Both the position numbers and the translations under genes were made by a program. A stretch of DNA of 64,000 nucleotides from Dendrobates tinctorius. Taxonomy: Eukaryota. Below the pieces are notes generated by a model. It was not told the origin of the DNA. It was given only the letters and a program-made list of their open reading frames with translations, and did no database searches. Positions 1,351-48,089 of the stretch are shown piece by piece. The stretch spans positions 14,632,001 to 14,696,000 of the forward strand of contig NW_027361725.1 of NCBI RefSeq assembly GCF_039654945.1, in the 5' to 3' direction. Each line of letters starts with the position of its first letter. The first letter of the stretch is position 1.

Positions 1351-1582
1351 ATGCAACGTGAAGGATGTAGGATGGGCGGGGGGGTGCAGGAGCCGGTGGC
1401 TGCCGGGATGATCACCTTAGACGATTTGGACAACATGACGGACGAGCTGGGCTCCGACTCGGCGTACAACAGCAACGGAAGCATCGAGGAAGAAACCGAA
1501 CCCATGGAAGACGGAGAACAGGACCGGCTGCTCAACTACTGGCAAACTGTGGCAAGAGGACATCAAGTTGAGGTGCCAAATG
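1351..1582 (+). CDS. soul3: SOUL/heme-binding protein family gene (soul3-like), coding exon 1 of 5 (joined CDS 822 nt, 273 aa)
   Basis: ATG 1351; MQREGCRM...MITLDDLD...DRLLNYWQTVARGHQVEVPN, then G|GTAAG donor (phase 1). Phases join correctly with the four downstream exons. Symbol is from recalled similarity to fish soul3. Confidence 0.85.
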
Positions 1583-2686
1583 GTAAGGGGACACGGGGTC
1601 AGAATCACTGTTTGGGGTGTTTGACATGACTTTGTTCATGCAGCGCTCCCTGGTTCATGTAAAGAGCTAGATACAATCTTGTATGCAAAGACTAAGGGCT
1701 CGTGCAGATGACCATAGTTTCGGTCAGTGTACGATCAATAAAAACATCAGATTGCACTCGGACCAATGTTATTCAATGAGGCTGTGCACCTTTACGATTT
1801 TTTTCCCCTTTACTGGCACTCGCCCATTCAGGTCTATGGGTCCGTGGATAACAATGGACCGAAGTCGGATGACATCACAGAGACTGAATGGAGACCATGG
1901 GAGAAATGTTGCTTTTTTCCCAGTTCTCCACATCCGGGAAAATCGGATCCGAGTCTAATCAGCATAATTGGGCCGATTTTCTCGGATGGAGAACGTATGG
2001 CTGTCTGCACCTGGCCGCAGGCTGGAGTCACATGTTTCCTGACCCAAAACACTACAGCGTAATTTATGTCGGGCTAATGGGCTGTCCCCAGGCAGGAGAT
2101 CTGCGGCCGATCCATACTAGTGTGAATCCAGCCGGATACGGAAAAAGTTCTGCAACTTCCTCATATGCCAAGTATCAATTTCTGCTTGCTGTCAGTGAAT
2201 GGTAGCACTTCTGGCTTACAGATGGCACAAGAATCTTTAGCTTTGCTATAAATGTATCCAGACTAATCCATCTTCAGCTCAGGATGTCAAACTGACACAT
2301 TGTAGCAAACTCCCAACACAGGAGAGATTTAGGCTGTTGGTGGTAGGGCAGGACCAGCTAGTAGGGTTTGGGTGTGAGCAGTAAAGTTCCCATTCCAGTG
2401 CCAAGGCATGCTGGGTGTTGTAGTGAACACAGTATTTGCAGATTATTGCAAGGCTCTGTCAGCTCCAGCGCCGGCGAGGAAGAGAATCATCCCCCAGTAC
2501 AGACTTAAGTCTATTAAAAAAGGATTTACATCATAGAGCTTATTCACTCTGTGCTGCAGCCACGACCAGAAGTGACAACTGGCCTGTCTGCAGCAAGGAC
2601 AAAGTGGCTTCTCTGCTACATGCAGGCCCATGTGATGGTCCATCATGTTAGCATTCTTGCCAAGTTCGATAGTACAAGGTCACTTG

Positions 2687-2968
2687 CAGTTGTGCCCAAA
2701 AGTTTACATACCCCAGCAGAATTTTTGCTTTCTTGGCCTTTTTCAGAGAATATGGATGATAACACCAAAACTTTTGATCAGGGTCATTTGGATGGTTTGG
2801 GTTGTCATTATGATTTAAAAAGAGAACACACAGAAGTTTGACAATAAATGGCTTCACCCAACCACTAACCCTAAGTGGAGGATAAGGTTTGGTGTTCTCA
2901 TTCATATTCTCTGAAAAAGGACAAGAAAGCAAAAATTCTGCTGGGGTATGGAAACTTGAGCATAACTG
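2687..2968. mobile_element. Tc1/mariner-derived MITE
   Basis: CAGTTGTGCCCAAAAGTTTACATACCCC...GGGGTATGGAAACTTGAGCATAACTG, long imperfect TIRs, TA at the right flank. Confidence 0.7.
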
Positions 2969-3409
2969 TATATGCTCGCTTCTCTTTATATTATGCTCGT
3001 ACAAGTCTAGGAAGTGGCGATATGAGGTGGTAAGAGGTGAAGATCGCACACCGATCACAAGAACAAGAGTCCCAAAGTCCCCTGTGTCAGCAGAGCGGAA
3101 GTGAACATGTGCGACCTCTCCAGTCTACAGAAGTGGTGGTCGCACATGCTCAGTAGAGCTCCATTCACTTCAGGGATTGTAAGCCCTCAGTTCCCGGGAT
3201 CAATTACAGATGCCAGACAGTGGCTTATTCCTCACTTCCTAATGGGAACACATGAACACGCACTAAAGCTGACCATGTGTCAGATCGCAAGAAAAAAAAA
3301 AAAAAGTACCTTTCAATGCTAAAATAGACAGTCTGCAGCATGCGTGCCACTAAGTCTCCTTACTGTATAACTTGCTTGCCAATACCTGTCTAGTGTAATC
3401 TGTCTACAG

Positions 3410-4125
3410 GGAGCAGGTGTGGGCTCTGTCCCTCTGCAGGCAGCGGGGGCGGTCCCCTGTCCCTCTACAGGGGGGGAGGGTACCCCGTCCCTCTACCGTG
3501 GGCTGGCTCTGTCCCCATACAAAGAGCAGGGGTGAGCCCTTGTCCCTCTGCAGGCAGCAGGGGCAGGCTAGGTCCCCCCTACAAACAGCGGGGGTGGGCC
3601 TCCGTTCCTCGACAGGCAGCGTAGGTGGATCCCTGTCCCTCTACAGGAATCGGGGGTGGGCTCAGTCATCCAACAAGCATCAAGGGTGCACCCTTGTACC
3701 TCTGCAGGAAGCAGGGGGCGGGCCTCCGTTCCTCGACAGGCAGCGTGGGTGGACCCCTGTCCCTCTACAGGGATCGGGGGTGGGCTCAGTCATCCTACAA
3801 GCAGCAAGGATGCACCCTTGTCCCTCTGCAGGAAGCAGGGGGCGGGCCTCCGTTCGACAGGCAGCGTGGGTGGACCCCTGTCCCTCTACAGGGATCGGGG
3901 GTGGGCTCAGTCATCCTACAAGCAGCAAGGGTGCACCTTTGTCCCTCTGCAGGAAGAAGGGGGCAGGACTCCGTTCCTCGACAGGCAGCGTGGGTGGACC
4001 CCTGTCCCTCTACAGGGATCGGGGGTAGGCTCAGTCATCCTACAAGCAGCAAGGGTGCACCGTTGTCCCTCTGCAGGAAGAAGGGGGCAGGACTCCGTTC
4101 CTCGACAGGCATCGGGGGCGGTCCT
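3410..4125. repeat. GC-rich minisatellite: ~124-bp higher-order unit built from ~31-bp monomers
   Basis: Units start at about 3615, 3739, 3860, 3984 and 4108; degenerate ~30-bp monomers lie at 3410-3610. Confidence 0.85.
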
Positions 4126-45196: not shown

Positions 45197-45363
45197 CTGC
45201 AGCGGGAGCCTGCCCTCCCCAGTCCCGCCTGCAGCGGGAGCCTGCCCTCCCCAGTCCCGCCTGCAGCGGGAGCCTGCCCTCCCCAGTCCCGCCTGCAGCG
45301 GGAGCCTGCCCTCCCCAGTCCCGCCTGCAGCGGGAGCCTGCCCTCCCCAGTCCCGCCTGCAGC
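45197..45363. repeat. 32-bp minisatellite, 5 perfect copies
   Basis: Unit CTGCAGCGGGAGCCTGCCCTCCCCAGTCCCGC. Confidence 0.95.
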
Positions 45364-47172
45364 AACAAAGCATGTATTAAATTAGAAGGGTTGTCCAGGT
45401 CCTAGGCTGTCAATATCAGATGGGCGGGAGTCTGATACCCAGCACCCTGAGCAATCAGTTATCATGTAACACAATGCTCATACTGTACTGTCTGCTGCCA
45501 GATACTACTGCTCGGCTCCCATTAAAATGACTGGATGCTGAGCAGGAGTACCGGACACGACCTGCGTGTTGTTCCGGTTCCATACACCCTTTACTCCTGC
45601 TGCCTGCCACAAAAGAACTGCTCATTGAGGATGTAGGAGCTGCCACAGAACTGATATTGATGGTCTAAGTCCTGGACATCCTCAGGAATTAAAATTTACT
45701 AAAATGAAACCTTAACTTCATTAAAGACACATTTAACTAGTACACATTTTAGTGTGAAGAATCCTAGTCAGTGACGAACGACATCTGAGGGAGGCCATAT
45801 TGATATAAATGTGTAACAAACTCAGCTTTGCTAAATCTATAAATACCATCAGAGAATAAAAACCAAAATTTCAAATTCCAAAAAAAAAAAAAAACCCCTC
45901 AGTCATGTGGTGTCTCCTAGTGCTCAGCCAGCAAAATAGCCTGAGAAACTGGATTAGCTCATTATTGTGCGGTTGTCAGGCATCTGACCCTTCCCCAGGA
46001 CCACCACAGACCAGCAGAAGAGCCCGAGAATCTGGATAGTCCATCATTGTGCGATTGTCAGGCACTTGACGCCCCCCCCCACTCCGGAACCACCATCGAC
46101 CAGCAGAAAGAGAGTTTGGCACAGCTGAACATTTATATACGTCACCGTGCCTGTGGAGTCTCTATTCTGCCCCCAGAAAACATACAATTCCTTTATCAAA
46201 GTAATGGATGTAGATTACAAGTTGGAAGAGTAGATGTATTTCCTGAAAATACATCAAACTATGTTGATTGGTGGGGGATCAGGTGCCAAGACCCCTCATA
46301 GATCATAGAGGCAGGGGCTGTGTCCTCCTAGATGGATGATGAGTTCAATAGACAGTGAGTATTCTCTTCAACTTTTCTGCCCCTTTCCTGTAGTGATCTC
46401 GGGGCTCCCGGAGCAGAGACACATTGAAAGTATATGACTCGCACATGCCCTGTAATTTACTGTCTCTGAAGAGCGGTCTGAATATGCCAGTTGAGCCCGA
46501 AGGCAATGAAATTACAATATCTGTACTGGCAACTTAGACTTGTGCAATAATTCAGTAAAAAACAAATGTTAACAAGCAATCACTGAACAAAAAACATTAA
46601 AATATGTCAAGTAGATGTCTATCCTGTACTCAACATGGAGATATAATGAAGGAGAGTCCCTGAGGCCATAACATTCACCATTACATGGTCACGTACCATA
46701 CAAGAAGATGAAGAAAAGGGTCGGCACTCTTGAAAGGACACTGACATGTCTGGGGCTATATAGTCTGAGAGATGGCATTGATGTCCTATGGGGCATTTCC
46801 ACCTTACTGCACTGCAGCTTCTTCATTCTTAAGTTTAATGGGGTATTCACATCAACTACAGTCATGGCATTTATAATTGGGGGGGGGGGGGGGGTTTCCA
46901 TCATTTAGGCCGCTCACAGTTTCTAAAAGGTCATCACTATATTAGATGGGAATACCCCTTTTATGTGAAATTGTCACCTTGGAAACTGCTATTTATCTGT
47001 AGATATAGGAAAAATCTGCAGGCAAGTAGCATTACAATGATTGCTGGCCACATATTACCGAAACTGCGGCTATCAGGAGAAAAACTAATTTTCTCCTCCC
47101 AGGAGCCACCGGCTTTCAGTCATGCAGCCGTGCATGGAACAGCTACAGTCATCACCCCAGAACTCTGAGTGA

Positions 47173-47376
47173 GGCCGGGATCATACTACTATGTGTGATG
47201 TGAGAAACTTGCACGAGTCTCTCGCATCAACACCCGGCGCTGCTGCCGGCACTCAGGACCGGAGCTCCAGCTGCATAGAAATACATTCGGCCGCAGCTCC
47301 GGTCCTGAGCGCCGGGTGTTGATGCAAGAGACTCGTGCTAGTTCCTTGCATCAAACACGGTAGTGTGTTCCCGGCC
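47173..47376. mobile_element. Palindromic Harbinger-like MITE nested in an older MITE (~46965-47635)
   Basis: GGCCGGGA...TCCCGGCC, TSD TGA. Confidence 0.7.
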
Positions 47377-48089
47377 TGACAGCCAGCCTGCAGAGAATCT
47401 GTGCAGAGAGAGTGCTGTCAATGAAAGTGCCGGGCAGTGCTTAGAGTCACCACTTGAAGTATAGTGAGCGGTGCTGTGATGACTTGTCATTTTGTGCATG
47501 TCCCCATAACTAAAGCAGGCGGATCCTGGAAGGAAATAAGTTAATTTTCTCCCAGCAACTGCATTTTCAGTAAGGCACCTAATCAGCACTATGACGCTAC
47601 TTACCAGCATTTTCCAAGGCGACTGCTTCCTTTTAACCATACTACCTTTGTTAGCCATATTCATAATAACCAATACGGTGAAAGATAAGGAATAACAAAA
47701 ATAAAGAGGTTGTCCAATGCTTCTCTCTTCTGCATCGGGAGGCGAGTGGTGTCCATGACATTGCGTCTACACATATCTGCAGAATATGTACACATCCCAG
47801 CAAGTTTGTATAGATAATAAGGCATCGGCACAGCTCACTTATTGATGTGGAAGGGACACTGAACAACCCCTCTACGATCTAACCCATAATCTTAAACAGA
47901 GAAGTCATTATTCGTCTCATGAAAGGTTTGAGATTGCAGACGAGCCTCGAAAAAACACTAAATGTTCTGCCAGCACAATAATATGCAGTAGCAGCATCAG
48001 CTAAATGAACAGGTCCAGAGCAGCACCGGCCTTACCGCACATCAGTGACTGGTCCATGACTTTCGTACCAGCCAGCGGCCAAGGCTCAC

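Follow-up and report, generated by a model that had tools for sequence, protein, structure and literature searches.

The closest described parallel to the locus reported here is the nesting of LRRTM genes in the alpha-catenin genes, in which the LRRTM gene is housed antisense in a single large, conserved host intron (2014, PMC3933685). These nests were kept in most jawed vertebrates and lost in particular lineages (PMC3933685). The present analysis concerns FANCM and a SOUL-family gene of Dendrobates tinctorius in a window of 64,000 nucleotides (64 kb; RefSeq assembly GCF_039654945.1, contig NW_027361725.1, positions 14,632,001 to 14,696,000 of the forward strand), which has a G+C content of ~39-51% and in which all positions below are counted from the first letter. 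Like the LRRTM/alpha-catenin nests, this one consists of a protein-coding gene antisense in a large, conserved host intron, with lineage-specific loss. The gene families are unrelated, however, and LRRTM genes are nearly intronless, whereas the nested SOUL gene is divided among five exons and contains long introns. FANCM, SOUL, HEBP and FKBP3 are not mentioned in PMC3933685, and a literature search retrieved no paper on FANCM together with soul3, on FANCM together with a nested gene, or on HEBP1, HEBP2 or SOUL together with synteny.

A preliminary description of the window, made from its letters, had proposed a complete SOUL gene nested antisense in a FANCM intron of more than 48 kb, and had named a truncated FANCM duplicate and a misassembly as alternatives. 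The comparison with the full-length FANCM protein of the species, with a collinear locus of another genus and with six further jawed vertebrates showing the same nest supported the first of these readings. We hold with high confidence that this is the true FANCM locus and that its intron 4, longer than 48 kb, holds a complete antisense SOUL gene of five exons, probably with its own transcription.

FANCM intron 4 and the gene inside it

The five SOUL exons all fall in the interval from the left edge of the window to the donor of FANCM exon 4, without overlap with any FANCM exon. FANCM runs on the minus strand. Its coding exon 1 (52427..53036, −, 610 nt) opens with the ATG at 53036, encodes the start of the helicase domain with a GLGKT motif and ends at the donor CAG/GTAAGG. 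Exon 2 (49981..50153, −, 173 nt) carries the DEAH motif, exon 3 (49665..49742, −, 78 nt) is bounded by an acceptor ending in TTCCAG and the donor AAG/GTGAGG, and exon 4 (48090..48248, −, 159 nt) ends in phase 0 after the residues SYIQ, with the donor CAG/GTGAGC at 48089. Together they sum to 1020 nt, or 340 codons, with AG acceptors and GT donors throughout; direct reading thus agreed with the earlier account of 340 intact codons, canonical splice sites and a GTGAG donor at exon 4. The part of intron 4 inside the window occupies 1..48089 (−), continues beyond the left edge and is collinear with intron 4 of Phyllobates terribilis. It is a phase 0 intron between SYIQ and VLETF.

The identity of the host was examined at the protein level. 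Pfam matches on exons 1 and 2 were DEAD (3e-9) and ResIII (2e-8). In an exhaustive search of 1.8 billion representatives with exon 1 as query, the best matches were full-length vertebrate FANCM proteins, headed by that of Phyllobates terribilis (92% identical) and including those of Hyperolius, Ascaphus, a caecilian, a lungfish and a bichir. A word search with Phyllobates FANCM, region 1-340, retrieved isoform X2 of D. tinctorius FANCM itself (P0181), a protein of 2027 amino acids with the domains DEAD, Helicase_C (PF00271), FANCM-MHF_bd (PF16783) and ERCC4 (PF02732). The window matched it at 100% in exon 1 (residues 1-204), exon 2 (203-262) and exon 4 (288-341); the 93% obtained for exon 3 refers to a tblastn stretch that overran the splice borders of this exon. 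Since the exons match a full-length annotated protein, the downstream FANCM exons exist in the gene model of this genome. With its superfamily 2 helicase ATP-binding domain at orthologue-level identity, the window gene is assigned as the predicted FANCM orthologue.

No sequence corresponding to FANCM beyond residue ~341 was found anywhere in 1-64000 by tblastn (E<=1) with six full-length orthologues. The result was the same with the residues of the D. tinctorius protein past 341, only residues 1 to ~341 finding a match. This bears out the previous failure to see an exon 5 on the minus strand within 1-48089. As a control of the method, the identical tblastn approach picked up the 47-residue exon 5 of Phyllobates (1e-22); the missing exon 5 of the window is therefore not a problem of sensitivity. 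The preliminary description had pointed to 36062-48089 as the interval in which an exon 5 would contradict the nesting, and tblastn found none there. An overlooked exon 5 in this interval was considered separately and rejected, the interval consisting mostly of a retrotransposon described below and giving no match to the protein of the species itself.

The comparison locus, L001, is an annotated FKBP3/FANCM/SOUL region of Phyllobates terribilis (GCA_046119375.1, JBJBSG010000007.1), in which FKBP3 (−) is called at 5891-9791, FANCM (+) at 10001-100985 and a SOUL gene of 273 amino acids (−) at 21989-45937. By blastn the window was collinear with it from end to end in reverse orientation, from 493 (matching 46844) to 63219 (matching 736), with a non-coding identity of ~70-84%. 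Order and orientation were alike over the whole 64 kb, and the differences consisted of transposon insertions and deletions only. On the tblastn coordinates, FANCM intron 4 of the Phyllobates locus extends from the exon 4 end (14179) to the exon 5 start (59710); it measures 45.5 kb, and the whole annotated SOUL gene sits antisense within it. The five SOUL exons of the window mapped in order onto 45937..21992, the annotated gene range, with identities of 92-100%: 93.5% for exon 1 (45937-45707, from the annotated gene start), 96.7% for exon 2, 100% for exon 3 and 96.4% for exon 5, which reached the annotated gene end. Gene order and strands are thus identical in the two genera, including a five-exon SOUL gene of 273 residues antisense in FANCM intron 4, but the intron is longer in D. 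tinctorius, exceeding 48 kb already within the window. Exon 5 of Phyllobates lies 12.9 kb past the match of window position 493. Its counterpart in D. tinctorius would accordingly be expected ~13 kb beyond the left edge of the window, for a total intron 4 length of ~60 kb.

These data bear on both alternatives of the preliminary description. A truncated FANCM duplicate or pseudogene comprising exons 1-4, lying beside a SOUL gene without any nesting, would explain why the window holds these four exons only and why exon 5 is known indirectly. Such a copy is difficult to reconcile with intact exons that match at 100% the N-terminal part of the only full-length FANCM annotated for the species, which is listed on one contig, with the presence of the conserved head-to-head neighbour FKBP3, and with a Phyllobates locus in which the same exons go on to exon 5 after 45.5 kb. 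Collinearity with that locus and the full-length annotated protein together therefore rule out the duplicate, which we consider highly improbable. Similarly, an erroneous joining of the FANCM 5' end to an unrelated region bearing the SOUL gene might be suspected in a repeat-rich stretch with two near-identical pairs of long terminal repeats (LTRs), which is error-prone in assembly. The window is nevertheless without any N, the 64 kb are ordered and oriented alike in an independent assembly from another genus, and the assemblies of six other species have the same gene arrangement. The collinearity with the independent Phyllobates assembly therefore rules out a misassembly at this scale, and this explanation, too, has a very low probability.

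The nested gene was delimited by motif search, tblastx against the teleost locus and direct reading. Exon 1 (1351..1582, +) starts with the ATG at 1351 and encodes an acidic N-terminal extension that is conserved with the nested gene of the teleost; exon 2 (15509..15600, +) has 92 nt and is 59% identical to the teleost locus (L002). The SOUL domain (PF04832) is distributed over exon 3 (19003..19144, +; 4.6e-12, 46.7 bits, profile positions 14-56), exon 4 (19338..19521, +; 7e-11, 42.9 bits, positions 61-114) and exon 5 (35890..36061, +; 1.2e-8, 35.7 bits, positions 118-172), the last of which ends with the stop codon at 36059-36061. Searches were run per exon and not on the joined protein, with the Pfam gathering cut-off for this family at 27 bits; each of the three exons lay above it, and together they cover positions 14-172 of 173, in order. 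The gene is thus a predicted member of the SOUL/HEBP family with a complete SOUL domain. The coding total is 822 nt, or 273 codons plus stop, with GT-AG at every intron and phases that fit, and the length equals that of the annotated orthologues of Phyllobates, Hyperolius and Ascaphus. The five coding exons previously reported on the plus strand within the window were therefore all recovered, with GT-AG borders and an open frame, while the end coordinate given for them, 36062, was one base too far.

The SOUL gene shares PF04832 with HEBP1 (p22HBP) and HEBP2 (SOUL), and its exon 4 aligned with HEBP1 chains in the PDB at 4e-5 and with HEBP2 at ~1e-3. It differs from both as a distinct paralogue with an N-terminal part of ~100 residues derived from exons 1 and 2, and heme binding is putative. 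The extension contains the motif DRLL.YWQ.VARGHQVEV and an acidic stretch (window 1375-1587, +), both conserved from frog to teleost; no Pfam family matched it ahead of the SOUL domain.

Over the five exons, the comparison with Phyllobates terribilis gave a synonymous divergence (dS) of 0.29 and a nonsynonymous divergence (dN) of 0.025, hence dN/dS 0.085, so that the SOUL gene is under purifying selection; non-coding DNA next to it was only ~75-80% identical. This is pertinent to the idea that the copy is an unexpressed relic, or young pseudogene, left in the intron. Such a reading can draw on the fact that SOUL expression in this species is deduced only. It is opposed by the open frame of 273 codons, the canonical splice sites at all five exons, the length identical to that of annotated orthologues and the low dN/dS, and we regard it as very improbable.

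The preferred reading, a working SOUL gene nested in intron 4 of a genuine FANCM gene, can be cast as follows. Transcription of FANCM would proceed on the minus strand, starting in a promoter region common to it and the head-to-head gene FKBP3; the FANCM pre-mRNA would extend across the SOUL gene, and intron 4 would be spliced out in its entirety. The SOUL gene would be transcribed on the opposite strand from a promoter of its own near 1351 towards 36061 and would end at its own polyadenylation site; using the other strand and its own promoter and polyadenylation site, it would have no coding sequence in common with FANCM. Read-through of the host followed by splicing is established for intronic nested genes. 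Both genes are probably expressed in D. tinctorius. Some points weigh against this reading. Exon 5 lies outside the window, and the evidence for it is the annotated protein together with the collinearity to a related genus; expression of both genes is inferred, the case being built on DNA and annotation; and intron 4 was mapped as the host only in Phyllobates and a teleost, the nest in the other five species being given by annotation ranges.

Age and spread of the nest

In public annotations, an antisense SOUL-domain gene encoding 263-283 amino acids lies inside the FANCM range in six species besides Phyllobates. Among frogs, FANCM of Hyperolius riggenbachi is annotated over 257 kb with the SOUL gene 60-113 kb from its start, and in Ascaphus truei, too, FANCM is annotated with a SOUL gene antisense within it. 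The annotation of the salamander Pleurodeles waltl places the antisense gene inside a FANCM of 626 kb, and that of the lungfish Protopterus annectens shows a nested SOUL gene of 387 kb in a FANCM of 2.55 Mb. An antisense SOUL gene is also annotated inside FANCM in the manta ray Mobula birostris and in the teleost Acanthochromis polyacanthus, where it was in addition mapped on the DNA. There the five SOUL exons mapped in order within a host intron of ~22.7 kb, located at the same codon position (YLQ/VLE) and in phase 0. Judged on sequence, the SOUL gene of the window is shown to be orthologous to the one nested in Acanthochromis fancm. A full different-strand nest, with the whole gene in one host intron, was found in this teleost and in the collinear Phyllobates locus. 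The length of the host intron varies between 22.7 kb (teleost) and, on the evidence of annotated gene ranges, hundreds of kb (salamander and lungfish). As a side observation, the lungfish locus shows the stretching of host and nested gene alike with genome size.

The situation differed in the elephant shrew Elephantulus (L003). Its FANCM resembles that of the window in the same boundary between exons 4 and 5 (TYIQ/ILEAF) and in having FKBP3 head to head, but intron 4 measures 1764 bp there and is without a nested SOUL gene; no SOUL exon match was found in the 96-kb locus. FANCM of the crinoid Antedon was also without a nested SOUL gene.

The preliminary description had proposed comparing the positions of the two genes in fishes and amphibians, and this comparison placed the nest in a teleost, a ray, a lungfish, a salamander and frogs. 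Such a distribution traces the nest back to the ancestor shared by jawed vertebrates, if not further. In our reading it arose in that ancestor or before it, and one mammalian lineage or more has lost it. The preliminary description had judged the arrangement unusual by the human gene, with an intron 4 of only a few kb and no such gene in it; the nest is the widespread state, and its absence in the one mammal sampled looks like a secondary loss. The sampling for loss comprised this single mammal, with sauropsids outside the sample.

Repeats in the intron and the FKBP3 side of the locus

Two Ty3/gypsy LTR retrotransposons are located within the window part of intron 4. The first (26119..31896, −) lies in SOUL intron 4 and has LTRs of 793 bp that differ by one base (99.87% identity), and the second (38461..44075, −) occupies part of the interval from the SOUL 3' end to FANCM exon 4 and has LTRs of 529 bp at 98.5%. 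Both carry gag, reverse transcriptase (RVT_1), RNase H, integrase and a chromodomain, and both share the orientation of FANCM, being sense within the host intron. In the first element the long pol frame is broken by a single in-frame stop at 28587-28589. The Phyllobates locus is without these two elements, neither being found at the corresponding place by blastn; they are thus recent insertions.

SOUL intron 1 contains a Tc1-like DNA transposon (7925..8989, +) with matches to HTH_Tnp_Tc3_2 (3e-22) and DDE_3 (1.5e-12). Given its open transposase frame of 355 codons, this copy may have been recently active. A second, degraded Tc1-like copy was seen at ~22300-23330 (−). Four tandem-repeat arrays, recognized by repetitive open frames and stacked BLAST matches, are situated at 3400-4260, 13860-14400, 17700-18450 and 62300-63220; those at ~13.9-14.3, 17.7-18.5 and 62.3-63.2 kb have counterparts at matching places in Phyllobates. 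Repeat bloat is typical of large amphibian genomes, and the size of the intron here would be the product of such bloat by the two young gypsy elements, the Tc1 element and the tandem arrays.

On the other side of FANCM, an FKBP3-like first exon begins at 53227 (+), ~190 bp from the FANCM ATG at 53036, so that the two genes stand head to head. The FKBP3 region (53227-58000, +) is collinear with the annotated Phyllobates FKBP3, which has the domains BTHB and FKBP_C, and the annotations of Phyllobates, Hyperolius, Ascaphus and Elephantulus show FKBP3 and FANCM head to head as well. Start codons separated by only ~190 bp suggest that FKBP3 and FANCM share a bidirectional promoter. The collinearity with Phyllobates extends to 60422-62220, which corresponds to DNA upstream of FKBP3 there.

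A difference from Phyllobates concerns the host protein. The Phyllobates FANCM model, named 'FANCM-like', has 1614 amino acids and no ERCC4 domain. This domain is present in the D. tinctorius protein of 2027 amino acids, and frog models in general, including those of D. tinctorius and Ranitomeya, reach ~2030-2100 amino acids with ERCC4. The lack of ERCC4 in Phyllobates reflects either a truncated annotation or a real difference at the C-terminus.

Persistence and meaning of the nested pair

The age of the nest raises the possibility that selection has kept it for a functional coupling, through antisense transcriptional interference or a regulatory domain shared by SOUL and FANCM, as opposed to passive entrapment. 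The nest has been retained in every non-mammalian jawed vertebrate sampled despite a wide range in intron length, and most vertebrate gene overlaps are reported as not conserved (PMC2151771); both observations fit a coupling. Against it, the removal of an intronic gene needs a precise rearrangement, so that long retention requires no function, and the one mammal without a SOUL gene at the locus keeps FANCM intact. The LRRTM nests in alpha-catenin genes, moreover, persist in jawed vertebrates without a shown coupling (PMC3933685). Taking both sides into consideration, selection for coupling is unlikely. Quite doubtful is the fuller proposal that the pair is among the oldest stable different-strand nests of jawed vertebrates and persists because antisense transcription of SOUL, or a shared regulatory domain, modulates the expression or splicing of FANCM. 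If this were true, a gene for a heme-binding protein would be functionally tied to one for DNA repair, and FANCM regulation in mammals would have changed when the nest was lost.

The arrangement itself is already known from the public annotations of many species. Because these annotations show the pair and intronic nesting is familiar in animals, the finding is ordinary; its deep conservation adds a modest observation. For D. tinctorius, under the reading favored here, the FANCM copy is a real full-length gene, which settles the question of its annotation, and the 48 kb devoid of FANCM exons belong to an intron swollen by repeats, which would house another working gene. More generally, FANCM and SOUL provide a clean example of a host gene and its nested partner retained since the ancestor of jawed vertebrates.

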